DNA of 64,000 nucleotides, from assembly GCA_000708835.1 (NCBI GenBank), contig DF237055.1, positions 62,001-126,000 on the forward strand. Direction: 5' to 3'. Origin of the DNA: Klebsormidium nitens (Eukaryota > Plantae > Klebsormidiophyceae). Below, one piece after another: positions 132-57,900 of the stretch. A program made the position numbers and the translations under genes. The notes below the pieces were generated by a model, which was not told the origin of the DNA, made no database searches, and saw only the letters and a list, made by a program, of their open reading frames with translations. Each line of letters starts with the position of its first letter. The first letter of the stretch is position 1.

Positions 132-896
132 TCAATTGACCGAGTCAGCGAAATTGTTTTCCTTGTCAAGGCGTATTTTACTGTAGGGTAAACAAGATAC
201 GTTGAGATGACCGTTGTTTACTTGAACAAGCTATCTGCTCTCCTAGAAACAAAATTGAGCCGCAGATGCTCAAAGAGCGCTTAATCACCCTTTGAGCAGA
301 GAAAGCAGACTAGCAGATTGCGAGCAGCTTCCGAGTTCAAGTTGCCAGTCTATGATCTTGTGGTCCAAAACTCCTGAATGTCAGGCTACGAACCCATGCT
401 TTGCACAAAGTCTTGAAAGGCTTGAACAGAAGGTAAAAGCAGTTTTGCGATGCACTTATAGATTCATGCGCATACGAAATTGTTTCCTGAAGAACAAAGC
501 TGAGAAACTTCACTTGCATCTTTTGATGAATGCTCGTGACGTGAGCTTTTCGAGCTTACCCGTATGCTCTTGCTCGGCTTCAAGTTGTCCACACTTTCTG
601 CAATCGTCAAGTGGCAGCTCGGACTCCCGTCCTACTTGCTGACACTCACAGTTGCCCTTCTGACCATGTTCACCAGAGTCCTTATCCGCAGCACCATCTT
701 GTGAGGTCGGGACACGGTTTGACTTAGCGTCCGGACAAGGACCCCTCTTCTCATGACCACTTTCTGAACATACACGTCCCTCAGCGCCTTCCTTTATTCC
801 TCTCACAGAACTTTCGCCTTTCGACCGCTTCTCTAGTGCTGTCTGCGCTGGGTTGGAACCCTCCGCAGGTCGCTTCTGTCCACTTTCGGCCGCCAT
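132..896 (-). CDS. Hypothetical small protein (~143 aa, 2 exons: 896-514, 180-132)
   Basis: ATG at 896 (MAAESGQKRP...) lies in ORF 510..932. GTGAAG donor at 513, polypyrimidine/CAG acceptor at 181-183, in-frame second exon (NKIRLDKENNFADSVN*). No family recognised. Confidence 0.35.
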
Positions 897-2339
897 TGTT
901 CCTAACGCCGACTTCTCGATTTGAAGGATCATACTGATGCAGCCGCGGCCTCGCGGCCGGATCCGATCGCGTGCCAGGCCGCTCGCGGCCGCGCGGAGTC
1001 AGAGGTTTCAAGTTTCAATACACTTCCGAAGCTTTCAGGTTTACAGCAAGCGCGGCCGCGCGGTCATGGCGCCGCTTCTGAGGATGCAACTGAGGTGGCT
1101 AGCTAAGCGTGTATTAGAAGAAGTGACCATGCAAAACCCGCGGGGCAGAGTTTGATCACCACAGCTAATTCGATGCTTCAACTAATCGCTCTGGCATTGA
1201 TATGTCGGTTCAGTTTGATTGCGCTCGCCCCCGCGACGTACGCCCCTCATCAATACTAGCCTAATGGTCACTATACGGAGCTGACGTTATGAATTCAGCA
1301 CGACGGCCAGCCCCAATTCGATAGCTATATAAGAATCGTCTTTGAAAGCGGCATTTTTCGATTGCCGTATATAACTCTTGGCTTTTGAGTCCTCGGAGCC
1401 ACTCAAATTCCCATTTTCTTCACAATTCTGGCACATTTCGATCCTCCTCCGATCATCACTGAGTTGCTCGGGCTGGCCCAACGTAGTTTGTAACCAAGCT
1501 GCTTTCAATCTGCTACTTGACTATAAGCCTACATACGATCGAGAGGAGGACCGCTTGCGATTCCCGCGAATGCTAAGTAAGCAGTGACTGCATGAGCTGA
1601 TATTGTTCAATATGAATAATACTTCAACTAAAAGGTTCGGTAATGACAGCACAGTGACACTGCGCCGGCCGCCCGACTCACTTAAATGCACGCTGCCATA
1701 TGCAGCTAGCGCAGATCATCAAATGATTCCTTGCCGCAACTCACCTATAGGTAATCCAGTGAGCAGCCTGCCAGCGCGGCGCGCCGCAATCATCCTAACA
1801 TGATCGAAACGTACCGCGCGCGAAGTTGACTGCAGATTAGAGCTAGAGGGGCGCGCTAACTTAATTCTGTATGTATGCAGTCCAACCAGCACATTGCCCA
1901 CTGAACTTTCCGTGCACCATGCAAACTTGTACTCAGGCTCAGGCGGGGACGCGCAATTTCAAATTTGCCCACGCAAAGTCTCATTCAGAAGACAAGTACG
2001 GCATTACCTCGCGAGGCGGCGGCAGCCCGGCTCAGCGGCTTCCACAATTCCACCATCCGTCACGTGCATATGCATGGTACTATAGCAGCTGAGATTGGAT
2101 CCAAGCGAGAAAGATCTGAGCTGCTCGTACGGTGAAATTTGGGATTGGCTCTCGGGCTTCAAGTTGTTCTAATCCGTCACCTTATAGAGGTCAGAGCGTT
2201 TGACCACAAGCGGAACACCGAGATAAGGCACAACCTGAGTTGTACGTCTCACTTAACATGCTATTTACTCACGTATTCTCCTCAAGCCGTTTCAAGCCCA
2301 AACACAACGCAACACGATCAGAAGCGATGCTGAGAACCA

Positions 2340-9272: not shown

Positions 9273-11289
9273 ATTCCTGTCCCTGTTCTTTGGCGAACAA
9301 GTCCAATCCAAGGCAACAGCTTCGACGAGTATGTGGACAGCCTACTTCCAAAGCTTCAAATACTAAGGCGGAAAGAAAGAGCCTATCACTGTGTGAAGCT
9401 CGCCGAAAATCAGATGTTGTACGACAAGTGCTCTGCTCCTCTCAGCATGTGCTTTCTCGACTTCACTTCAACTTGCAATCAACGAAAAGTTGACCTTGTA
9501 TGATGTTTCAGAGAAACCCACAATAAATGTTGCATTGACCTTTCTTCCAGAATTTGAAGTCCCTACTGTCGAAGCTTACCTGGCGTCATCCCGAGCTCCC
9601 TCATCCGTTGAAGTATTTTCTTTTGCAGTGCCAGCTGTCCATCCAGCCAGCTTTGAGGAAGTGGCCCGCCCCACGCTTGTAAGTTGGCCATGCGCGCCCA
9701 TGCCAGAAAAGCAGGGCCGCCAAAGAAATTGCTGAGGTCAGCGTCTGTGAGGCCAAACTCCGGACTCTGCAATGCGACACGTGGGCAGCATCAGCGCTTG
9801 GAATGTCTGAGGAGATGCAGACCTGTAATATGCAACGTCAGAACCTCACTCAAATCTATCCAAACCAACAAACAGCGGTCTTTTTGCAATGGACGGTCGA
9901 ATGAAATACTTTTCCAGTTGTCAGTATGCTCACGTTTTTGATCCTTCAGGTGTGTCAGGTGCTGTATCACTCTTAAAGATAATAAATGACTTGTCCATCA
10001 CTCAGCTATCGTTGGTAGCTCAGAGACTTCGAACTTACGGTATAGACTTTCTGCCAGATGGTCTCCTGCCCCGTAAACGCCAGCGGCAAGTTGATGCCTT
10101 GTAGGGCCATCCAATCTGAATCAAGAAGAGGGAAAGAGTTCGTTTAAGACAAAGTCCACAGAAAAACGCAGTCAATGACAAGACACCACTCTGTGGGAAG
10201 TTGAAGGGATTAACTTATCATGTTTTGTGAGGGCCAAGGGTCAGTCCAGGTGATGTCAACTTCTTCAAAAGGCAAAGATGTAGAGGACCTGTCTGCTATT
10301 CAAGGGTGTTTCTGAAGTTCCCGTTACTCGTGCCCTTTGAATCCTTGTATGATTTCGCCACACCTTTCACAAGACAAAGAAAAAGACAGTGTGAATGTCA
10401 CTCTGGCTAAAGCATCTGCCCCCCAATATAGTACAGTATATAAGAGTTTTTTTTCTCTTCAATCAAGAAAGAAACATTCTGTTGACCAAGACTTTCTCAA
10501 CGCTTTCAAGACATCAGTGGTCGACAGCATCAAATTTAAAGTTTGCGGAAGCGACCAATACGTGAATTGCCCTTTGCAAGATTGATGGCAGGGTGGTGGC
10601 ACCTCATCACAAGGGAAGAAGTAGGAACAATTGAGAATCTGTCTGACCTTTTGTGTCTTTTGCACATTCTCACCTATTTCCTTCTCCCACCGCGCCCAAT
10701 CCCACCAGACCATGGAGTAGCTTACTGTGCATACGTTCTGGTAGTAGCTCCACTTGACAGGGCGGACGACTCTGACTGACTGCCCAACCTTTGGCAGGTT
10801 CCCGCTCAAAGTATGCTGCTTAATGCTCTCCAGTTGAGACCCCCCAGTTTTTTCCCAAGACACGTGCGCTCCACAATTGTTCTTCAGGTAGTAGTGCAAT
10901 CCTGCTGCAATATCCACTCCTGATGACCCCCTGATTCTCACCTGGCTGGTCGTGTTTGTCAGACTGTATGACTGTGTATTCAAGCCCTGTTGAGCAGCTA
11001 CATTGCTGATGTCAAAACACGCAGCGCCGCCACACTCTTCTTCTGAAAGAAACTCCAAATGAAACAATGCAGCCAAGTCAGGAAGCAGTCGTTTGACCAG
11101 AGCCTCTGCCGCTGCTAGCTGGACCTTCTCATTCTTCAATGGATGCAGAATGATGGCATCGCTCATGCTAGACAATCCAATAGCATGCCCTTCTGATCCT
11201 CCCTCAGATTGTGTCGCGCTGGGCAAAACCGCTGAATGGAACACGACCACAAGAAAGACTCCCAGCAGCCAAAATTGTTTGCCCGCCAT
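2340..11289 (-). CDS. NAGLU: Alpha-N-acetylglucosaminidase (GH89), secreted/vacuolar; ~11 exons
   Basis: Signal-peptide-like start [16 protein letters not shown] at 11289. Exons give [24 protein letters not shown]|[95 protein letters not shown] and [12 protein letters not shown], ending at TGA 2342-2340. Both expected catalytic Glu motifs are present. Confidence 0.95.
4521..4730 (-). repeat. Two degenerate copies of a NAGLU exon 3' end plus its 5' splice site, inside the downstream intron
   Basis: gagctcacaggaa.ggccggct..ggt.caggtcct at 4521 and 4677 match the real junction at 4867-4915. Confidence 0.85.
7227..7400 (-). repeat. Two degenerate copies of a NAGLU 3' splice site plus exon start ([13 protein letters not shown]), in the upstream intron
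   Basis: gccacgtggcactgcag|GC... copies at ~7230-7290 and ~7325-7395 match the real acceptor at 7161-7163. Confidence 0.85.
9241..9276 (+). repeat. (GTGTTC)5 microsatellite in a NAGLU intron
   Basis: Five perfect hexamers followed by GTATTC. Confidence 0.95.
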
Positions 11290-11508
11290 GGCCGCGACTT
11301 TACTCAATCCACAAGGCCAGCTACGTGAGACTTGTCTTGCACGAATCTGATTGAGCTGCAGAACCATGCAGGCACACGTGAATTCTCACAAACTTAACAT
11401 ACGGTACTGCAGATCACACAGGGCGTTGCACAATGCATGCCTAGCTCTCGAAAAGGTTTTCTGAAGAAGCTTGCAAGGGTGGCGGCCCCCCTGCAGCGCT
11501 GCTTCATA

Positions 11509-11705: not shown

Positions 11706-14700
11706 ATGCAGGTGGTCGCACAGGACTCTGCTCTGATGGGGAGCGGCGGCATTGCCTTTCGAAAAGGCGTGTCCGCTTTTTCATTGCAGGCTTCTCAGGA
11801 GGTCAGATGCCCCATATTAACACCCGCATCATGCTCCCTCCATTCCCAAAAATACATGACGTCAGCATGGCTTGGAAACCCTCAAGGGCATAGGAACAAC
11901 TCGGTATTTGACCTCAACCCTTCATCGGTCTGCGACTTGAACCAAAGTTGGCCAGCTCTGCTTAGGCGGTCCAAATGCAGACGGCGGCCTGGACCAATCA
12001 AAGCATCTGCTTATCCGAACTCCGACCCTGACTCTTCTCCCAACGGTGCCTCATCTCCATTCAGCTCTGCCTCCAATCCAAACCCAAACTCTGAATCCAG
12101 CCTACGAGAAGCAGTGCTCCAATTGAAAACCGAGCAGCAAAACCTGCGGTTAGTTTCAGAACAGCCGTCCACAAGACCAGCTTGGGAGGTCGGGGTGAGG
12201 TCAGCGAAGAGTGGGCCATCAAATGGGATCACGCTCATACGGAGGACAGTGCGGGGGGGGCAGACGGAGGATCATCCAGGGACGGTGGTGGTGAGAAATT
12301 CCGGGCCTTCCAGCTTGCATTCATTGGCTGTGACCCGTAACACAGGTTTCCCCATGATACACAAGGATGCTGCCACCGAGCGTGTTGCAGCACCAAGCAA
12401 GTTGTCATTCCTCAAAGAGACTCAAAATGAGCTTCGGGTCCAGTCCTCTCCCAAGCACTTCATTGAGTGTCGCCCTCCCTTGCTTCAACATTCTTCTGCA
12501 CACGTGCTGAGTAACCCCATCCCTACGGATTGCCCCTTCCTTGTATGTCCGGCTGGCCTTGATTGGTTGTAAGGTACAGTGAAGGTTCGCAGAACGGTTA
12601 CAGGCGCTGCCATTGAGCATATCACAGCAACAGACTGTCGACGCTCTGATAGATTCAGCTTCCATGCATCCATCTCCCAACCTACTTAAGTTCCACCCTC
12701 TCACTTCAAGCAGCTCCTGTATCTTCGCTCCCATTGGCTGGGTGACCCCACCCTCAAAACCTCCCCTTCTGATACCACAACGCGCATGTCTTGCACCCAA
12801 ACATACCACATGTCTTTTGTCGCCCCACTTTGCATTGGCCCCTCAATACTGACGCAGGTCTTTGGCGACGTCAACCGGCAGAGCGTCATCTCAGCCGGCG
12901 GTGACATCATTGTTTGGGGACGCCTGCGGGGAGAGGCCCATGCTGGCAAGTTTGGGGATCGGAAAAGCGTCATCTGCGCACTTGATATGGCCCCCACAAA
13001 ACTGAACATAGCCGACAAAGTTGCGTACGGACCAGAGGGGAAGGGGTCGCACTATCCGGAGGTTGCGAGCATTGATGCGGGGGGAAACATACAGTGAGGC
13101 TCTAGCTCGCTTTGGCATTTGTTCCTGGGTCTCTGATGTAAGAAAGAAGAATTATTTTCTTCTCGCATCTAATCGTGAAATGTTTGTTGTTGGAGTTGCT
13201 TCCGGAAGAAATGAAAGGATATTCGACATCAGTCAGGCAAATTTTGAGATAGCATCTGCCTGATTGATGAACATCAGGTTTTGATCTGCTTGCTGTGGTA
13301 TGTCAGAGCTTCAGTCTTCAGGACCTGTATGAGAGGCTCTCCGTTTCTGCCCCTCCTCTTTATCAGGATAATTTCGCAGCCGCCCTCAGGATGGTTGCAG
13401 ATTTGCAGTCACACTGTACTTATCACTGAAGAACACAAATCTTTCATCGAGAAGCTGACTGAGAGAAATTTTTGGAAGTTGCATTTATTCCACGCTTCTT
13501 TCGCCCCTTATCCACCATTCTCGTCTTCACATTATGTTTGACTCCTTATAGTTCACGGGACTCTGACAAGCCGCATCTCTTTCTCACCTTGCAGGATCGA
13601 GCCATCCCTCTTCTACCAGAATCCTGCCGGCCAAAGTGGCGCCAACCGCTCTAAAGACGGCCACACACCTCTGACCAAGCCCGCTTGGGCCGCACTGTTT
13701 ACTGGGGCGTACATCTCGGTCGTCGGTTTGGCCGTGTTACTATGGCCTGTCAAGCTCTTCGGGCTTCTGTTCAACGTGAAGTCAATTAGCCCGGGGTGGA
13801 TTCGAGTCGGGGGCGTGCTGGCCATGGTAAGAAGCGATCACACCTGACTCTTTGATTTCCAAGTCAGTACTCAGGTCGATGGGTTCTGAGATCGCTAAAT
13901 CTCCTGCAGACTTGCCTGGTAGAAGCCATGACCTACAGAAACTCGAGAAGCCTCCAAAAGGATGATCCACCGAACCTTTCAATGAGTCACGACGAGTCAA
14001 TTTTCGAGCCCGAACATCTTTCTCTCTTTGTAGGTGGAAGTTCGATGATACAAACAGGCCTCTTGTCAGTCCTTCCCGTCGACCCTTGGTATTGAAGAAT
14101 ATTTCTGCGTCTCTGAGTGTCGAATGCGTCCCAACGTAAAGCTAGGAATCGGGGCAGGTTGGTCTACAAACTGCACTACCGCTCCTGTTCAGAATGTGGA
14201 AGGTTCCATTCCGTAAGACGGTGATTTTTCGCAATTGAGAAGTAAGAATTGCGTCCTCTCTCAAGTTTTTAGTGCCTACTATTTGTGGACCCCCCTGCTG
14301 GCTCTACTAGGACTCCGCGAGGGGGCTTTTTCTGGTGCTTGTAATGATACGATCCCTCACCAAACTATTCAAGTTTGCGGCTTGTATCAGATTCTGGTGC
14401 CTACTATTAATCACCCCCCTGCTGGTCCACCCAGGACGCGCGGACGCTCTGATTGATCTTTGCTCAATCTAGTTGAGTTCGTCCAGCAAACCAAGCAAAG
14501 TTGCGTCTTCTTGCAGGTATTCGGTGCCTACTATTTGGGGACCCCCCTGCTGGCCCAACAAGGCCTAGGCGCAGAGGCGTTCTACTGGTCCACCGTCGTT
14601 GGCCGCGTGTTTCTCTTCACCGCTTTCTGCTTACTGGTCGCCCTTCGGCTTGCGCAACCGGGGCTGCTTGTGGTCAGTCCACTTTCCGTATCGTTTCCGA

Positions 14701-15466
14701 GATCCGTTTGATATTCAAAGCGATGGATGGAAGCGAGCATCGATCGTTGCGTTTGTCAACTTGAAAAGTTAACAGCTTTTCGACCGGGAGCTTGCTTGGA
14801 CGCTTCTTGTGTTCTGCAACGAAATAAGGAGCAGCAAACTAAGATCGGCGTTTTCTGACAAGAAGGCAATCGTTACAGTTTGTAAATATCTTGCCTTTTA
14901 AACTTCTTGATGGCGACAATGCCTCACACACCGAAGGGATTCGAACCAGAAGGGACTCTCACGTCTGTCGCTGAAGTGACCGAGCCACTTCACAACGTTG
15001 GGGCCAATCTTTGAGGCGCTGTCCGTACGTCGGATGAGGCGTTTCGTGACTCTCTTACAAAGACCTGCCTGCTTTTTCTGGGTTCTTACACGCCTACGTC
15101 CAAAACTTCTATGAATGACTTGGTTGAGAAAGTAGTGAAGGAACTACGAAAGAAGGTTGGCTCGGAAACTGTCGCGCTTTTCCGACCTCCTACTGGTATC
15201 TGATCCGCAACATTAGCCTGGAGACCTCTGACCAGAGTCTTACGGGTTTATGGTTGAAGTTGAAACTTCATTTGATGTATCCGCTTTTTGACATGGAAAG
15301 ACAAACGGAAGCGATCGCGGTGCAGGCCGTTCGTGTACTTTTAATCCCTCTGCGGTCCTTTTCTCATATTTGTTTTACTCTACAGCTCGGAGCGGTCAAC
15401 CTGGCGGGGGCCTTTGCAATGTATCAGGCGCTCAACTTTGAAGATAAGAGCGAACGGGACTCGTGA
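11706..15466 (+). CDS. minC: Plastid-targeted MinC-like protein (MinC C-terminal beta-helix domain) fused to a C-terminal ~4-TM domain; exons 11706-12290, 12858-13093, 13595-13826, 14517-14672, 15386-15466
   Basis: The spliced frame gives a Ser-rich transit-peptide-like N-terminus, then RRTVRGGQ...GTVV|VFGDVNRQSVISAGGDIIVWGRLRGEAHAG...ICALDMAPTKLNIA (MinC_C signature), then hydrophobic segments (WAALFTGAYISVVGLAVLLW; GWIRVGGVLAMVFGAYYLG; FYWSTVVGRVFLFTAFCLLV; GLLVLGAVNLAGAFAM). All GT-AG junctions are phase-compatible. Confidence 0.85.
14245..14430 (+). repeat. Two degenerate copies of the MinC-like exon 4 acceptor and exon start
   Basis: gtgcctactatt...cccccctgctgg at ~14270 and ~14397 match the exon starting at 14517. 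Confidence 0.8.
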
Positions 15467-40975: not shown

Positions 40976-43900
40976 ATGGCCAAAAAAGTCAGCGCAAAGG
41001 CGGGCAAGCATGTGACTATAAACGTGGACCCACCTGATGACATAAGACGAAGCGGCGCCGGCCGAGATAGTCTCGCGAGCACAAAAGCCGCCCTGCGCCA
41101 GCCGCTTATCGCCCCAAAACCCCTCCGGCAGTCGAGCAGCTGTCAAATGCTCGGGGACGCTCTAGCGCAATATGTTCATTCCGACGAGGAAGACAAGGCG
41201 ACGGACTCTTCTAATTCTGATTTTGAATCCGATTTTCCTCATCCTAGTTCTAGAAAGAAATCCAATGGAGTAGACCCAGAAGCAAGCCAAAAGAGGCGCC
41301 TTCTCAGGGCCCGCACTGCGCCCATTCTAGCGAGGGGCACGTCGATCCACAAAGTGAAGCAGAAGAAAGTAACTAGAGCGAGGGTGATGATGCTGCAAGC
41401 GGCAGTGGCGTTGCTCGTGTATCTCTTTCTTGGGATGCTGACGTATGCGCTCCAGCGGGATGAGTTTCGGGGCGTTACGACCCACCCAGTGATTGACTCA
41501 ATGTACTTTTCAATGGTCACCATGACTACCACAGGTGGGTGTACATTATTTTTTCCCTTGGGCAGAGGAAGGAACTGAAACAAGGTGAAAGTTGTCTGAG
41601 GCCTGCGCTTGTGCTAAGTGATGACTAGCCACTGGCGAAATAAAAGAGAGAGGGGATGCCACCACCTCAGTTTGCTAAGTGAGGGTGAGGTGGCTCGCTG
41701 GGAGAGGGAGGGAGGTTATATGTAGGACCTGAATATGTAATGTTTAAGGTCTCGTTGTTTAGACATACAACAAAGCCTTCTAACGTGCTTTACAAGCCAC
41801 TATTGCATGGAGCTTGCTTGGGTGTGCCTAGAAGTGACGGTCACAACCTTCATGGTGTCGCCCAGTCCGTGTTGCATCTTTGAAACCCACGGGGGTGGTA
41901 TCCACAATCCTGTAATCCTGCCTGCAAGAAATTCCAGAAGGTGGAAATCTGCACATGCATTCCTTTAAGTCAAAAGGCCGAAATGTCGAATCTCAACCTT
42001 GTTTATTCCTTCCAGGCTATGGCGACCTTGTCCCCTTCACAAAGAAAGCCAAGCTCTTCGCGTCCCTCTTCGCCTTCGCCGGTCTCGTCCTATTTGGAGT
42101 CCTCATCTCCGGCGCCGGTCACTACCTCATAGACAAACAAGAACGGCTTTTACTAGAAGCGGCCCGTAGGCGCCTCGACAGGGGCAATGAGTTTTCTGGG
42201 GGGGAGTTTACACCTGCCGATCAGGCCCCCACGGGGGAGAACAAGTACTGGAAGCTTCTGCGTGCGGGGACGTATATTGGGGGGGCTTTGGCAACAGGGA
42301 TGATAGTGTTGATGAAAGTGGAGGGCATGGACTGGGTTGACGCACTTTACTGCGCGTGCGTGTCGGTGTCATCAATTGGGTAAGAGTTCCTTAAGTGAAA
42401 CGTTTTTCAGATGTTAGCAGTTGGAGCTTGGCACTTGCATACTCGAGAGCAACCTGCACTTCGAGGAAAAGTTGAGGTTTTTTTCCCACTTGCGGACAGC
42501 TTTCTTGTTGGTAAGTGTCCAATGTCCTCTGCTTGCAAACAGTGACTCAGGTGCCTGAGCAACCTGTGAGCCTTGTCAAACATAGCTGAACCTTTCACGA
42601 AGCTCGTGACCTTCGTTTCTGCTCCCGCTGGAGTTACTCCGGCAGCTCGTGTGGAGTTTTCAGATCAAGATTTACACGGTCGATGCTTGTGATGCAAAGC
42701 TTGCGACGTCCTCCGTTTAAAATCGATCAACATACACCTTCCAACCTCGTACTTTGCCCAGCATGTGTGCCGCTCTGGGACGCCAACCGGGCTTTCAAAG
42801 CTTTCCGGACAGTTTCTGATGCACATGCCGACACTCTGCAAATCGTTCTCCCCAAGCGACGAGACAACATGTGAACTTCGTGGTTATTGGGTGCGCCGAA
42901 GCTTTGCTTGAGTCGGCTGTTTTGATGTTGAAAGCAGTTGTCCATTTGTCCGTTCCTTTTGACATCCGCAAACGTGGAGCTTTCACTCGAGATTCGGACT
43001 GATCAAAACCGATACGAGTCCCTTGAGGACTACTTGCTTGGTTTCCCCTCGGTCCTTTGTCCGCGGGTCGGTGATCAGAGGCCTTCGGACGCCGTTGAAA
43101 TGTTCCTTCAGACGTCTCCGCTACTTCTCAAAATGTGGTCGGACACCCGTCACTTTTCGGACACCTTGTACCTTCGCTGAGGACTCCAGCGCTTTGTGCC
43201 GTTTCCACTTTTGCATGGGTGTCCGCAGCTGCGGCGATTAGAAGTTCTGGACGTCATTTGGGCGCTTCTTTGTTCGTTCTGGCTGCCGCTGAGAATCTTT
43301 CGGAACACGGTCTGACACTGCATTGCAATCTGTTGCATGGTGTCCGCAGGTACGGCGACCGGAGCTTTTGGACGTCGTTCGGACGCCTGTTTGCGACGTT
43401 TTGGTTGCTGCTGAGCGACTTTGGGTACGCGATTGGACACTTCGTCTCCAATTAATGGATTTACCTTGTTGTCAAGTCTTCCCTTCGGTGTCCACAGGTA
43501 CGGCGACCGGAGCTTTCGGACGCCGTTCGGACGCCTCTTTGCGACGTTCTGGCTGCTGCTGAGCGTTCTGACGGTGGCCAAGTCGATCACGCTGATCGCG
43601 GAGGCGCGTCTTGAGTCCCGCCAGAAAAAGTTCGTCAAGGAAGTGCTCTGCAAGGGGCTCACGAGCACCGACTTCCAGGCGGCCGACATTGACAACGACG
43701 GGACTGTTGGGTGAGCGAGATCCTGATTCGTAAACCCTGGAAGACTTCAATACAGGTTTACTGGGCCTTTATGAAGTTCTTCCAATTTCAGGGCTTCAAA
43801 AATCTGTTCGATTCAAGTGATTTTGGAAGCAGGAAGTTCGGCTCTCAAGCAGCGGAAGTCAAATGCTCGGATGATGTAGTGGACGAACCTGGATCGAAAA

Positions 43901-44453: not shown

Positions 44454-46275
44454 TTCACGAGTAGAGACTGTACAGAGCACAAGTTTTCCAAGGTAGATTC
44501 TTCTTGGGTTGCTTTTGGTAGAAGACCTCCGGCGATCTCCGTAGGTTTGACCAGATGTTGAGGAGTTGACAGAAAAAGTTCGCCTCGAGTGCATTGGGAG
44601 AACCATTGTTTCCCGAGGCATTTGAGTTCTGAAAAGACTCGCGTATTTATGACCAGGTTTGTAAATTTAGGTTAAAGGAAGGTCACCTAGGTGCAGGTTC
44701 TTGAGTTCTAATCCAAAAGAAGCCAGGTAAAACTTGTAGAGAGCACGAGACGCGCTTGTTGGCAATCAAGTCGATCTGTCAAGTGAACTGCCGTGGACCC
44801 TGAATCTGCTGATTTTGAAACGGGTATACCATATCGGCAGCACGGAAATTTTGTCGGGCAGCACGGAAATTTTGTCGTTGAGACGAAACCCGATCTGAAA
44901 CGCTTCCTTTAACCAACCAGAGTTCTGCTAGACGCAAATCTCTGACCGAGTTGGTGGCAGCAATCAGCGGCATTCAATTGAGACGGCCCAAGCACGTGTG
45001 ATGCGCGTGCAGACCTAGCTTTTCTTGGAAGTTGTCCGCGACTTGTCCGAACAGTGCCTCTGCATGTGGTAAACTTAACATGCTCCGGCGCCGTTGGCGG
45101 CCGCCGCCGTTCGATATGTTGCATGCACGAGAATTTGAATGCGAGAGCTAGCGACTCGGACAATTAACATTGAACACCGTCACACGTACATGACTCCATT
45201 GTTGAATCGGAATGATCCGGGCGGCACGGATCTGCGGTCGATCAGTTGCAGGTATATACGTGACTTGCCGGCCATGATTCATTATACTGCGATGGCGGGC
45301 CATGACTCATGATGCATGATATCGATCGACTCGATGCCGGCCAAAGCTAGTCTATGGTTTGACTGCAAAGTCCGACTACATTGCAAATCCTGTCGATCGA
45401 TCATGCATCAAACGAGAACGCGCGATGTTTGATGGTCTCTTTTCACACGCCGACGTAGCCAGTGCGGCCATGAGCTTCTCATGGCATACAATATTTGTGA
45501 TTGTTGTGTTGCCCATGCAACACATTTGATTGCAAACCGTACGCGTTTCAGACTGCTCGCGGCCGCCGCCGGCCTTCCTCATGCAAGTTATTGCTGCCTG
45601 CGGGTTTCTTGATCTTGACAACCGAATTGTGAATGTTGAACCGATTATATAGACTCAGCTAACATCGCTTCTGAAGTCAATTGTACATTTTGAGCTAGTA
45701 CGTACGATTCCAAAGCGGCCGCCTGCATGGTACTCACAAGATCGATTTGCATGGTTACGTACGGATACCTCATGCAATCATTTCATTAGTACACCAAATG
45801 ATCGACGACCGTCGTGTATCTAGAAAGGATATAATGGTAATATGACGAAAGTGTCAGCACGACAGAACTTTAAATCTAGCGGCCTGCGTCGCTCATCTTT
45901 GAATCGGCTCCAGATGCGTATGCAAGTGAGACAGGTTTACAAGCAAGCGTAAGCCGGGGGCGCCAATGCGGGGGCCCCTTGCGAAAGCGCCTCCACGAGA
46001 GCATGCTTGTCCCATTAAGTAGTTCCATGAAACACCCAACATGGCGGTGCACTGGATGATCATCCTCTTGTCTTAAGAGAAACGAGGCCGGGTATCCGGC
46101 TTCGGTTCACTCTAAGATAGGTTCCTTTCAGCGATCACGTTCAAGGACATTCGGTTGATTCCCTTATAACGAACAGAGTATAAGTACCGTCAGTATCCGA
46201 TCGGCGAGAGACCACCTTGAATGGACTGCTTCAAGCAGAGCTACTGCAAACGCGGGTCAGTTTTGTCTGGAGCTC

Positions 46276-46280
46276 AAAAA
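46276..46280 (-). terminator. Pol III oligo-T terminator (TTTTT) of the tRNA-like RNA gene
   Basis: The minus strand reads ...CAGCTCCA-CACGTGGCCC-TTTTT, so T5 begins after a 10-nt trailer following the discriminator. Confidence 0.75.
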
Positions 46281-46290
46281 GGGCCACGTG

Positions 46291-46627
46291 TGGAGCTGGC
46301 GGGAATCGAACCCGCGTCTCTCACTCGAAAGGCAACCCTGGTTGAGGTGCCGCGCAGCACGGTCGCAGGTCAGTTATCCGGTCGCCCTCCAAGCAGCGGA
46401 AGCCAGAGCGGATTCGAGGGACCGGAAAGGTCCCCCCCGGTGTGTCAGAAGTGCGCATCTTCCTAGCTCCCCGCGCTGGGTGGGGGTTTCCGGGTTAGTC
46501 CTGGGTTAACATCGGTTAGTGGTTAGTGGTTAGTAATAACTGCCTGCGACACTGCAACGGCCCTGCCTTTGAGTAAGCTCCCCGGCGAGGCCCCCGAGTT
46601 GGCACTCTGCCACTGAGTTACAGCCCC
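46291..46627 (-). ncRNA. 337-nt tRNA(Ala)-like / tmRNA-architecture Pol III RNA with no anticodon and a ~250-nt structured insertion
   Basis: Acceptor stem GGGGCTG/CAGCTCC with G3-U70 and discriminator A; D arm ACTC-AGTGGCA-GAGT; T arm GCGGG-TTCGATT-CCCGC. Long-range helices CTTACTC-AAAGGCAG/TTGCCTTT-C-GAGTGAG and GTCGCAGG-CAGTTAT/ATAACTG-A-CCTGCGAC. Flanked by TATA/USE-like elements upstream and T5 downstream. Confidence 0.85.
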
Positions 46628-46657: not shown

Positions 46658-46697
46658 TTATAAAAGGTCATAGAAAGGCGGAAGAAAGTTGTGGGTC
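46658..46697 (-). promoter_or_regulatory. Upstream Pol III promoter elements: TATA (TTTTATAA, 46665-46658) and USE-like GACCCACAAC (46697-46688)
   Basis: TATA lies ~31-38 nt upstream of G1. The USE-like motif (plant USE RTCCCACATCG) lies 22 nt further upstream, close to the plant Pol III spacing. Confidence 0.6.
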
Positions 46698-51987: not shown

Positions 51988-54900
51988 TCAGGCATGTGCC
52001 TTGATCACGCGCCGCACCCACCGCCCGCTCTCGGGGTCAAGCTTGAGCTCCCATGTGGGCCAGTAATGCAGGTCCTGCTTAAGAGACAACACTTTCGGCT
52101 TTCCGTTCAAGTGCACCGTTTTCAAGCGGACGAACGCCCCGTGTTTGACTTTGTTCACGGCCGCAAGGAACGCGTCCAAATTGGGCGTCGGACGTCCGTT
52201 GACTTCGAGGATCCATTGGAGGGCGTACAGAGCGTACCGGTGGACGGGGCTGCCGTGGCACCACCTGCCACGTGGAAGAATAATGATTGAATGTGACGCC
52301 ATGTGACGTCTTCAAATAAAGATCCATCGAAGGGCGCACAGAGCGTACTGGTGAACAGGGACTCCGTGGCACCACCCGAAACATGGAAGGAGTGAAATAG
52401 GAGGTCACGTCACGTGAAGTCAAAAGCACAGACGACAGAGGGCGTCACAGGAGAGGTGACTTGCTTTGGCGCCCGGCTTTCACAAGCGTGGTCACGATGT
52501 TCGCAGAACGGGTGCAAAAAGCAGGTAACATCGTATAAGGAAACGATGATGATTGCAAAGATGGGAGAGGGACTTTACTTCCACGCAGGGACGCTGCAAT
52601 CGACAGAGCGGTGTGCCAATGTCTCAAAGTCGGCGCGGCGGGCTTCCGTGGCCATCTGGGACTCAGCAATTCGGAGATTCTTATGTGCTCAGGAACTTTG
52701 GCTGGGGGCCGCATTAGGAACTGCTTTCTCAACGATGCTTGTCGCAACCTTCCAATCGAATCGACGTACCGAAAAGGTGCCCACACTGATCAACGACTCG
52801 CACCCAACAATTCAAACGCCCACCACCAAAGCACGGCCGTCGGAGCTTACGAGCAACGAACTCTGCTCACCTTAAAACAATGTCCAACCGCAAACCTCAA
52901 CGCTCACCTGGAGATATAGACGCCATTCCCTTCCTTGGGCATGAAGTTGAGCGACTTGACGGCCCGATGCGGTTCTTGCAACGCGGCCCCCGCCCAATGC
53001 ACCATGCGCGTGGTCCCCAGACCGTTCTCCAGCTCCGTGCCTACCGTCACCTGGAGCTCCGCCCCCTGCAGAATAGTGCGAACTCTATTCAGACCTGCGC
53101 CTGTCCGTTTCCCTCGCTTGGACGCCAGAAAGTGGGAAAGTGAGAACGTCGGAAACTCGGAAACTCGGACAGTCATCGAGATCAGCCGCGGTACTGCTTT
53201 TCCAACTTTTCTTGTGACTGAGGTATGCCATCTGTTCCTCTCTTCCGCTTCTGGGAACCGTAATTCATTAGCAGGAAGCCGTCAACAAAGCCCGATAACA
53301 GTTTTACGACCGCTGCTGTCTTAGAACGGCGAAAGTCTGAGGACCTTGGATCCGAAACACGTGTATCGAGCGGCCTCTGATGACGGTTTTAGTCTGGGCT
53401 TTTGTGTGGATCATCTCGACAGTTGCCTCTTTCTCTGATGAGTAACTCTTTCTGACAAAAACCCTACTGGAAAACGTGGTGATCCAGTGGCTTGGTCTTC
53501 TTGAAACAAAACCATGACTGGAAGACGTGGTAATCCAGTGGCTCGAATTCCTGAAAACCCGATAGATCTTCGAACGGAAGAGACGAACGACTCAAGCGGC
53601 CGAAGCCGCTCAACTTCCTCCGAGAGCTTCTTCCCACTCTGAAAACCTCACGTTCCATTGTCCATCCAAAGCAGGCACCTTCTTTGCACGTGCCCACGAA
53701 AAACCCCTGGCTGCCACGTGTCAGATCGTCCACACACCCACCTGGCGGAGCACCGTGAGCGGGAGCGTTTCGCCGCCGCTCCCCTCGAGACCGCTGCAGG
53801 CGACTTCGACGTCCCGGTAGCACGTGACCGGTTCCCCGTTGATCGCCAGGATCATGTCGCCTTGCTGAAGGGCCTTCTCGGCCGCAGAACCCGCTAGACA
53901 TCCCTTGACACGGAGCACCTGCCAGGAGAAAGGTAAGTTTTTAACAGTCTGGTTAAAGGAGTCATTACTCTTCTGTCGAAATAAACCGTTCTTCAGAAAA
54001 AGCGCCTTGCTGAGGCCCCAGAACCCGCTAGACATCCCTTCACCCTAAGCACCTGTCAGGGAGGAAATCGAGAAGCTGTTCAGAGAAAGAATCATTGATT
54101 CAAATTCCGATTGGGAGACGATGGCGGTTTATGGCCATTATTATCTCGCCCTGCTGCAAACACCTTCGTGCGAGCAGGATCGCTAGACAACCTGCTATGG
54201 GCGCACCTGCCAGAAACGAAATGAGGGGAGGTTTGCGAAGCGGAGAGGGTGTTTTGGAGCCGCTTCGAGTCTCCAAGGATGAGGGTTCGATTTTGTCTAT
54301 GGCTTTTTCTTATAGTACGAAGGGAAAATACCAGAAGCAATCGAAGCACCTGCCAGACATCGAACAACTCCGAATGAACGTGCTGGATTGAAAGAACCAC
54401 AAAGAAGGGGTTCGTTGTGCTCTAAGGTGGTAAACCTTCAGCTGCAGAACTGTTGTCAGCTTCCTTTTATTGCGAGGAGCTGCTAGAATTTTAAACCCTT
54501 CCAGTCTAAGCCGCATTAACCAGATTGTAACGGCCAGCTTTTTTCCCAATGTAAACGTACATTAACCCGCTAGTAACCTGCGTCCAACAATACATTTGTC
54601 CGGCATACCTCACCCCACCTTTTGCCGGAAGACGACATCACACCGGCGTCCCAATCCGCTATCACTAACCAGACCTCAAAGCTTGGTTATCCCACCATAA
54701 TCAGCCACTAACCTGGCTCTGGAGTGAGTCCTTTTCCAACGAATTTCAGACCCACTGTTCGGACACACCAAACTGCATTCCCGGAACATCACTCGCTGTT
54801 ACCAATGAATTAACGGTTCAGTACCTCTCCGTAACCCGCCACTGACCTGTCTCCGGAGGGGGTCTTTCTCCAGCAGTTCCTTGACCCACTGTTCGGACAA

Positions 54901-57900
54901 ACCGGACAGGGAGCGCCGTTACTGATCAGAACCTTAACCACACCGTAACCAGCCACTAACCTGTCTCCGGAGGGAGTCTTTCTCCAGCAGTTTCTTGACC
55001 CACTGTCAGTTAACCACACCGTAACCAGCGACTAACCTGTCTCCGGAGGGAGTCTTTCTCCAGCAGTTTTTTGACCCACTGCTCGGACAGTCCGAAGCTG
55101 CGCGCCTGCGACAGCAGCGTCCGAGACATTTCCACTCCGAGCGTCCGTAAGAGGGGCACTCCGCAGCCGTGGATCCGGGACGGAAGTGATGACGTGGCAG
55201 GCCCTGGGCCGTTGATGAGGGCGGGCAGGACTTCCGCTACCGGGTAGATGGGCATGCCACGGACGAACTGCTGGTCCTCGTTGGAGTCGCTGTACTTGAC
55301 CTGGAAAAAAGAAAGCATCTGGAATGAAGAACAGTTGTCGAATCTGCATCATCTGGCACCTCGCTTCGACTCTATGGTTTATTTCATGATAAACAACAGA
55401 ATAGATACAGAATACTACAGAATAAAATGGAAGGAACAGTCCATCTTCATGTGCTTTGATGGGCGCCAAAGCCGTACAGTTTTCCGTCAACGACTAAGTG
55501 CAAGAAAGAACGATTGGAAAAGATTCTAGGCGGACGGGCTGGTCGATTTCAGAAACTCCGCCATGCTTGTGCAAGCTCCCGCGATTACTTTTACACAAGA
55601 CTTTCCATGGCTCTTAAGACGGTTTTCGAAGGCAAGACTTTCCTGAGTGGCGCATTCGAAGGAAACCAAAAGCGCTCACCAAAAGCCGGTTTCTCATAGC
55701 TTACTCTCAACGGCAGCCCTACTCTCCCCTCAACCCCACAGTCTAGGCGTTCCACCTCACCTCTATCGAGAAGCTAGCACGAGCACGCCTCTACTGAGCG
55801 TTTCTCAACACCCCAGTTTCCATCTTGATTCCTAAACCCTTTGATATCCAACACCCTACACCCTGAAGCTTTGAAGCTTTGAAACTTTGAAACTCTGAAA
55901 TCTCTCACCTGCATTGAGAAGCTGGACCAAAGCGCAAGAACGCCCCCCCGGTCGTCCGCCAAAACCCCCGCGAACGACGCGCCAAAGTCCGTATCCAGCT
56001 CGATAAGCTCCATGTTCATTGCCCGGTACCGAGGGGCGTCCGCTGAGCTGACGTTCGCCGCGAGGTTCGGGTTAGTGACAACGGACTTCCGGGAGGTTGG
56101 GAGTAACCCGTCCGTTAACCCGGTGAGGTTAACCTTGTCCCCTCGGCGGAGGGTGACGTCAGGCCGGAGGGTTGCGGCGCGGAAGTGGGGGGCGCCCGCG
56201 CCGAGGTCGCGGGGGTTGTATGCGACGATGGCGAAGTTGTGGACTGGGTGGAGGAATACCACCTGGAGAGGCGAGTGGAACTCAGTACGACTTGTGATCA
56301 TCAATTCAAGGGCACTTCGGGTTCTCCGAACTTGCGAGATGCTTGAGAATAACCACTGTTTGAACAATGCGATACAAACATGAAACGTGCATAGTATGCA
56401 TGACGGATGCAGAAGAGGATGAACAGGATCAAAAAGAAGGAGGAGCACGAAGAGGAGACTTGTGACGTCCGAAACGCGGGAGCAAGCAGGATCATGACAC
56501 GGCGTTGGCAGGAAACGGAACAACATCTGAGCCTCTGGTCGATTAGCCCGTTTCGCTACAATTACTTTGCAAACTTCGAGGCATTACAATTTCTTGACCA
56601 CCTCAAGCAGACATACAAGCACAGCGAACAATTCAGGTCTACAGAAGGCAACACGAACTTGTTCTCACAAGCTCAAGCCCCACGCCATTCTTTAAATTTT
56701 GCCAATGCTTCGCACAGAACTCCAGCAAGGGCTATCTCTCCAAAACGTGCGCACCTCTGCGGGAATCTCGACGGGGTAGGCCACGAACGACAGCATGACG
56801 TCACCCACGCTGATGGGCACGGTATTGCGGTCCACGGCCACGAGGCCCAGCGTCGGCGAGTGGTGCACGATGAGGCCCGTGCCGATGAAATGCTGCGCAT
56901 GCACGCCATCCAGCAACGCCTGCGGTTAAAAAGGCAGTGATCAGATGGTGGATCAAGGATTGCATCAAAAGTGACGAACTTTGGGGCCGTCTAAGTGTTG
57001 GAGGAGATCAGAGGTAAGTGGCGGTGCTAAGCGATGGACGAATAGGCCCGTGCCGCTGTAAGTGCTGTGCGTGCACGCCGTCAAGCAACGCCTGCGATTG
57101 CAAAGTAACATCTATTTTGTGCATCAAGGAGCTAATCAGAATGACAAAGTTCTTCCAGAGGCGGTCAAGTATTGAGGCAAATACGAAGTAAGTGGCGAGA
57201 CGAAGCGGTGGACCATCAGGCCCGTGCCGAGAAAGTGCTGCGCATGCACGCCATCCAGCAGCGCCTGCGGTTAAAAAGTGATGGAACAGGTTGTGAATCA
57301 AGGAGTCAATCAGAGGTGACAAAGTCCTTTGGGTTATTTCAGAGGCCGTTTTAAGTGTCGACAGAAATAGAGTCAAGTGGCAGTACTAAGCGGAGGACAA
57401 TCAGGCCCGTGCCGATAAAATGCTGCACATGAACGCCGTCCAGCAACGCCTGCGGTTAGAAAGTAACGCTTATGTTGTGGATCAAACGATTGCATCAGTA
57501 GTGTAAACGTTTTTCAGGTTGTTTCAGAGGCCGGCAAGTGTTGAAGAGGGAATAGAGTCGAGTGGCAGTACTAAATGGTGAACAAACAGGCCCGTGCCGA
57601 TAAAGTGCTGCGAATGCACGACGTTGAGCAACGCCTACAAAATAAGAATGTCACTATATCTGATTTCGACTTGAGCAGATTGTAGCAGACTTATCCAGAT
57701 TCACCGTGCAGTAGACGATAACGCCCGCCCCAATGAGAGGCTATGCATAGACTGCCTGCAGTTGAAAAGTTTGATTTGAAAGAGCGGATCGAAAGGTGAC
57801 GTACTCTTAACGTTCTTTGCTTCAGTCAATTTTGGATCGAAAGATTGGGTCAAGACTTCTTAAACGGCTTTAGGGGTCCATCAAGCGCTTCTTGGCAGTA

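Follow-up and report, generated by a model that had tools for sequence, protein, structure and literature searches.

Clustered branch-point words in a non-coding RNA have been described for Gomafu/MIAT, a long mRNA-like RNA polymerase II (Pol II) transcript of vertebrates, whose tandem UACUAAC motifs are recognised by SF1 as PMC5861421 relates with reference to Tsuiji 2011. A second point of comparison is the tRNA frame of the mascRNA of MALAT1 and of engineered tRNA scaffolds, which, like the frame of the RNA described here, likely recruits RNase P, RNase Z and the CCA-adding enzyme and likely stabilises a foreign RNA placed in the position of the anticodon arm; mascRNA differs in being Pol II-derived and without an insert, and the scaffolds are man-made, whereas here a natural gene is kept across species. 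The response element of Quaking and related STAR proteins consists of ACUAAY with a UAAY half-site within 1-20 nt, and QKI also binds the Gomafu/MIAT array. To our knowledge, the branch-point-mimic device is so far known from a vertebrate lncRNA.

The RNA gene described here lies in a 64-kb stretch of Klebsormidium nitens DNA, which as a whole is called the window, and it shares with Gomafu/MIAT the clustering of branch-point words in a non-coding RNA, with one UACUAAC and three more ACUAAC in 42 nt. It differs in that the carrier is a 337-nt, tRNA-framed, Pol III-type RNA of a green alga, that a single full UACUAAC is present and that protein binding is putative. The gene and its parts are listed below, B, C, D and E denoting related organisms, with D1 and D2 the two versions in D.

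46658-46662, minus strand: TATAA at -35 to -31 of the RNA, the same in organism D despite a varying surrounding flank
46627-46291, minus strand: whole RNA gene, 337 nt, with tRNA-Ala-like ends around a 260-nt insert
46604-46627, minus strand: 5' acceptor strand GGGGCUG and D arm ACUC/AGUGGCA/GAGU, where G3 pairs with U70 and the A box is matched (sequence read)
46536-46577, minus strand: 5' strand of the long helix, RNA nt 51-92, ending directly before the loop
46494-46535, minus strand: ACUAAC loop, RNA nt 93-134, with four ACUAAC and five UAAC (sequence and fold)
46514-46534, minus strand: perfect tandem array of 3.0 copies of a 7-nt unit, GGTTAGT on the plus strand and ACUAACC in the RNA (Tandem Repeats Finder)
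46504-46513, minus strand: 10-nt block with the word UUAAC, missing in C and E and reading UUACC in B and D1
46494-46499, minus strand: fourth ACUAAC, not within the 3-copy array but in phase with it at a distance of 35 nt from the first copy, and reading GACUAAC in all relatives
46318-46377, minus strand: 3' strand of the long helix, RNA nt 251-310
46291-46315, minus strand: T arm GCGGG-UUCGAUU-CCCGC (B box) and 3' acceptor strand CAGCUCC (sequence and Rfam in E-value mode)
46276-46280, minus strand: T5 run, 11 nt past the discriminator (sequence read)

The ends of the RNA, GGGGCUG and CAGCUCC, form an acceptor stem whose G3-U70 pair is the alanine identity pair, followed by an A as discriminator, and CCA is not encoded. 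The T5 run is likely a Pol III terminator and the RNA is probably made by RNA polymerase III, while a scan for bacterial promoters and terminators gave no match, as expected for a eukaryote. At gathering score, Rfam assigned no family anywhere in the 64-kb window, and ARAGORN, with introns allowed, reported neither a tRNA nor a tmRNA. An intron-containing tRNA-Ala was rejected because the region 3' of the D arm, CCAACUCGGGGG, leaves no 7-nt anticodon loop with U33 and an NGC anticodon, in line with the negative ARAGORN result. A tRNA-derived SINE was likewise rejected, since the RNA closes both of its ends in a single acceptor stem and carries its B box at the 3' end. A B-box scan of the window returned one further exact match, at 14937-14947, which has no T stem and was rejected as a second family member. 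Homologue searches with the spurious open reading frames over the gene (one of 81 aa and an open frame of 72 aa) gave no match, and our search of the literature on Klebsormidium found no description of such RNAs.

The gene is probably intergenic, given that the closest gene that could be recognised, at 40.9-43.7 kb on the plus strand, encodes a two-pore K+ channel; its exons (Ion_trans_2, 40976-43714, plus strand) include an EF-hand-like stretch. Open reading frames of at least 170 aa number 16 across the 64-kb window and none within 2.5 kb of the RNA gene, and this paucity of long frames fits a eukaryotic nuclear genome. Farther away, an alpha-N-acetylglucosaminidase (NAGLU) exon lies at 10459-11367 on the minus strand, with land plants as its top named matches, in keeping with a streptophyte, and a 185-nt tandem repeat of about 3-4 copies with 73-78% identity occupies 56862-57636. 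Immediately 3' of the RNA gene, the 90 nt at 46201-46290 show 1 substitution and three indels in organism D, and this conserved stretch may be a second element or part of a longer transcript.

In the RNA sense, from 46535 to 46494, the loop reads UACUAAC-CACUAAC-CACUAAC-CGAUGUUAAC-CCAGGACUAAC, with ACUAAC starting at RNA nt 94, 101, 108 and 129 and UAAC at nt 96, 103, 110, 120 and 131. The direct read thus bears out both this sequence with its five UAAC motifs, as an earlier note on this DNA had given it, and the placement of UAA at nt 96, 103 and 110, one in each frame, although the latter follows arithmetically from a period of 7 nt and carries no evidential weight. The MFE fold of the 337-nt RNA (-148.8 kcal/mol, z = -3.7) comprises the acceptor stem, the T arm and the long helix between nt 51-92 and 251-310. 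This helix terminates at the U92-A251 pair, so the loop does adjoin it directly on the 3' side, as had been claimed; among the relatives, changes at nt 57, 74 and 91 retain pairing as G-U, and the A>G change at nt 254 retains pairing with U89. The further claim that the segment is looped out holds as a prediction, since nt 93-134 have a mean unpaired probability of 0.80, compared with 0.35 for the whole RNA, and the remainder of the RNA contains no stretch of at least 6 nt complementary to the loop, except for the self-palindrome GUUAAC. This is the largest stretch of the RNA predicted to be unpaired, it is poor in G (4 in 46 nt), and the predicted folds of the orthologues leave it open as well.

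The two strands of the 64-kb window together contain 18 copies of ACTAAC, a number that equals the shuffle expectation, and 4 of these 18 fall within the loop. Tandem arrays that score like the one in the loop are found 22 times in 64 kb, about one per 3 kb, with two more of them less than 1 kb from the gene, and the chance of such an array falling inside a 337-nt gene is about 11%. This frequency favours a plain explanation, by which the loop is a weakly constrained linker without any sequence-specific role, whose 7-nt unit arose by replication slippage, whose likeness to branch points is coincidental and whose presence in relatives reflects recent common descent. Against it stand the fourth ACUAAC, which lies outside the array and has a chance expectation of about 1%, and the rarity of CTAAC elsewhere in the window (48 in 128 kb, both strands), where the loop alone forms a cluster of four CTRAC.

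The comparison of orthologues drew on contigs of four related organisms, B, C, D and E, chosen among those whose sequencing runs contain parts of this stretch, with the window as reference A; the orthologous sequences were reconstructed from the listed differences, which gave two versions for D (D1 and D2) and a single version for C and E. The same RNA is present in all four with about 95% identity, and in B, which covers the full gene and both flanks, 23 substitutions and 8 gap letters were counted in 429 nt. The loops read as follows.

Loop A (this window): UACUAAC CACUAAC CACUAAC CGAUGUUAACCCAGG ACUAAC
Loop B: UACUAAC AACUAAC CACUGAC CGAUGUUACCCCAAG ACUAAC
Loop D1: UACUAAC AACUAAC CACUAAC CGAUGUUACCCCAAG ACUAAC
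Loop D2: UACUGAC AACUAAC CCCUAAC CGAUGUUAACCCACG ACUAAC
Loop C and E: UACUAAC CACUAAC CACUAAC CCCAG ACUAAC (10 nt missing)

The earlier note had proposed orthologues as a check on the loop, and B, C, D and E all carry it in a non-random form. The D arm and 5' acceptor strand (46604-46627) show zero variation among the relatives, and the RNA body of organism D, with about 3.5% differences as opposed to 14 in the 93 nt of its upstream flank, looks to be under selection as judged from these sequences. In organism C, a run flagged as probable RNA yielded a single contig spanning RNA nt 39-267 with zero depth on the flanks, weak evidence that the orthologue there is transcribed as a discrete RNA; RNA-flagged runs of K. 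nitens contain none of the words sampled.

Within this conserved RNA the loop is the most variable part, with 7 of its 42 columns variable (plus the deletion) versus 18 of 295 in the rest (p = 0.024). Across the four haplotype groups, 8 substitution events and the 10-nt deletion have accumulated in 42 nt, and zero cores have been destroyed: two of the 8 events hit a core, both as CUAAC>CUGAC in different motifs and lineages, and the others fall in spacers, in the A preceding a core or in the UUAAC word. All four CU(A/G)AC cores are therefore retained in all copies, while the spacers, the preceding base and the spacing vary. The fourth ACUAAC is invariant in all relatives and the copy number of the array is likewise unchanged. 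The unweighted chance of zero core loss in 8 events is 0.009 for a strict CURAC and 0.047 for yUnAy, values that are suggestive only, since the CURAC rule was partly picked after inspection of the data, which makes the core tests in part post hoc, and the organisms compared are close relatives. A plain count of variable positions in cores and spacers (2/20 vs 5/22, p = 0.41) is not significant.

These results bear on the linker explanation from both sides. The loop's variability, its tolerance of a 10-nt deletion and the fact that the D2 loop, with 4 of 42 positions differing from A, does not differ significantly less than the flank (14 of 93, p = 0.58) are what a weakly constrained segment would show, and at only about 5% divergence the retention of the loop in relatives is weak evidence. 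On the other hand, no CURAC core has been destroyed by substitution (p ~0.01-0.05), and neither the fourth copy nor the number of array copies has changed in any relative. We regard a weakly constrained linker, together with a coincidental likeness to branch points, as doubtful while deserving serious weight; if true, the finding would merely mark the least constrained part of the RNA.

The unpaired, G-poor and repetitive character of the loop, with no internal partner, also has the look of a region that pairs in trans, and the loop could then be an antisense guide or decoy for nucleic acids reading GGUUAG or UGGUUAG, for example fragments from the D loop of tRNAs or a second RNA of the family to which it belongs. 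We consider such a guide, and such targets, improbable: no target was found, GTTAGT occurs in the window at chance frequency, the CUAAC>CUGAC and spacer changes would weaken a long duplex, and the variable spacing disfavours one continuous pairing register.

Our preferred reading, held tentatively and rated somewhat below even, is that the loop of this tRNA-framed RNA may serve as a multivalent docking platform made up of CURAC words, a proposal built on sequence comparison, fold prediction and analogy. In this proposal, the exposed, G-poor, single-stranded loop would display four CU(A/G)AC words at variable spacing, and the RNA would owe its promoter, end processing and stability to the tRNA-like frame. 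Among candidate partners, an RNA-binding protein of the KH/STAR type, for instance SF1 or a Quaking-like protein, seems the likeliest to us; U2 snRNA, through its region that binds the branch point, or a different RNA is less likely. The tRNA-framed RNA would act like the tandem UACUAAC array of Gomafu/MIAT or like protein sponges of the CsrB type. The holding of a splicing-related KH/STAR protein would thus be shared with Gomafu/MIAT as a proposal. Consistent with independent short binding sites, the third and fourth cores are 15 nt apart in A and 5 nt apart in C and E. The loop also gives a weak match to the Rfam model MIAT_exon5_2 in E-value mode, because that model rests on the same UACUAAC words.

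The resemblance to the Quaking/STAR element is close in A, where four ACUAAC and a UAAC half-site lie in 42 nt with a variable spacing that suits a bipartite dimer site; it is looser in the relatives, where B, D1, C and E have lost the UUAAC half-site, one core has become CCUAAC and two have become ACUGAC, and the partner here is putative. Several findings count against docking. No other part of the RNA varies as much as the loop, short tandem arrays are a common background in the window, and the base preceding ACUAAC, which belongs to the full SF1 site UACUAAC, varies, as does ACUAAC itself in D2 (CCUAAC). The suggestion that the loop mimics a branch point or STAR site fits the data as regards the CU(A/G)AC cores, which relatives keep, and not as regards the preceding base, which they do not. 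In addition, a crude positional search of the window for CURAC on the 5' side of candidate 3' splice sites gave no peak, leaving CURAC unsupported as the alga's own branch-point word.

More specific versions of the docking platform appear less probable to us. That the anticodon-side loop of a tRNA-Ala-shaped Pol III RNA would be a four-site branch-point mimic titrating SF1, a Quaking-like protein or U2 snRNP is unlikely in our estimation, and we give similarly low credence to the wider form of this titration reading, in which the RNA would be a tRNA-framed splicing-factor regulator of the green lineage and a specialised member of a wider family with different payloads. If docking is true, a branch-point mimic would be seen here for the first time on a small tRNA-framed Pol III RNA, and one member of an undescribed family of tRNA-Ala-framed RNAs in Klebsormidium would gain a testable function.

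The shape of the RNA also invites comparison with the bacterial and organellar tmRNA (SsrA), with which it shares the G3:U70 acceptor stem, a near-consensus T arm, the lack of an anticodon arm, the long helix that replaces it and a single-stranded stretch with stop codons. By this account, which had been raised as tag-less trans-translation, the RNA would be a tmRNA-like rescue factor, an alanyl-tRNA mimic with stops in every frame. The Rfam tmRNA model (RF00023) in E-value mode does match with E = 2.8e-12, the long helix is P2-like, and every relative has UAA or UGA in all three frames. The match, however, reaches only 34.8 bits against a cut-off of 47 and is confined to the 3' end, namely the T arm and the 3' acceptor strand, and ARAGORN found no tmRNA. 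As for the three-frame stops, the same UAA/UGA change also keeps CURAC, and any 7-nt repeat that contains a stop gives stops in three frames arithmetically. No accessible reading frame or resume codon is present, as stops occur in all three frames within 17 nt of the loop start and the sole in-frame GCA upstream lies inside the long helix. Whereas SsrA has a reduced D loop without a D stem, here the D arm is full, there is no tag frame, and the gene is of nuclear Pol III type, sits in a genome without long ORFs and belongs to a family with unrelated inserts. Ribosome rescue in the eukaryotic cytosol is carried out by Pelota/Hbs1, we know of no SmpB partner here, and a literature search for SmpB in Klebsormidium found no paper. 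Hence the stop codons stood up to comparison while the reading frame and the recognition as a tmRNA did not; tag-less trans-translation is unsupported, and we consider a rescue factor of this kind very improbable.

A telomerase template is the complement of about 1.5 telomere repeat copies, and the loop had also been proposed as a reverse-transcriptase or telomerase template beside a boundary helix that would specify (TTAGTGG)n. In favour, a strong helix is followed at once by some 2.9-3.0 copies of the 7-nt unit, CUAACC resembles the core of a TTAGGG-type template, and telomerase RNAs are likewise Pol III-type RNAs with a short repeat on the 3' side of a stable helix. The telomere repeat of Klebsormidium is, however, CCCTAAAA/CCTAAAA (PMC8287931), not the TTAGTGG that the loop would specify. 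The heptads also differ among A, B, D1 and D2, the last reading UACUGAC-AACUAAC-CCCUAAC, so that the relatives do not share one uniform unit. The telomerase RNA candidates of Klebsormidium are type-3 Pol III genes (PMC8287931), and a type-3 promoter is reported for telomerase RNAs of plants, whereas the gene described here has internal A and B boxes. The 64-kb window contains no (TTAGTGG)n arrays. With the mismatch to the telomere repeat and the non-uniform unit, the template proposal fails; it was rejected, and its probability is close to nil. Whichever reading of the loop holds, trans-translation in a eukaryote can be discounted, as can a new telomere template.

In B and D, the 3' shell of the RNA (46291-46327) has 10-20 times the depth of the remaining RNA, and contigs that share it run on into at least 5 different sequences, indicating that many genes share this shell around other inserts. 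A more distant relative was reached through the match P0022 to the K+ channel exon (90% identical), which led to the Logan contig L003 (SRR23617307). At 14150-14189 this contig carries an identical 3' shell and terminator context in a syntenic position, 3' of the K+ channel gene and with a diverged flank, and it ends within the shell (position 14189), before the loop; a Cpn60_TCP1 gene lies upstream of its two-pore K+ channel gene.

A metagenome scan with the 24-nt 5' shell returned only two contigs, L001 and L002, neither of which is an orthologue or matches Rfam or ARAGORN. In L001 (Ga0255052_10024182, 880-1040, minus strand), a tRNA 3' half with T arm and acceptor strand is followed by a 5' half that is identical to the first 25 nt of the 337-nt RNA and adjoins an ORF. 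This permuted order of tRNA halves is reminiscent of YrlA-type RNAs, and the contig looks bacterial on account of its high G+C content and the ORF beside the tRNA-like pieces. L002 (Ga0114994_10128719, 1330-1380) is an AT-rich marine contig with a tRNA-Ala(UGC)-like 5' half of the same first 25 nt, which then passes into T-rich sequence unlike tRNA.

Finally, a different kind of repeat in the window contains related words. At 54650-55085 on the plus strand there are four similar units, two of which form a 76-nt tandem repeat at 54934-55081, and each unit reads (A/C)CACU(A/G)ACC or GCGACUAACC. In the last three units these words are followed by a pyrimidine-rich stretch and CAGCAG, resembling stacked units of branch point and acceptor, and the 9-mer CCACTAACC is common to these units and the ACUAAC loop.
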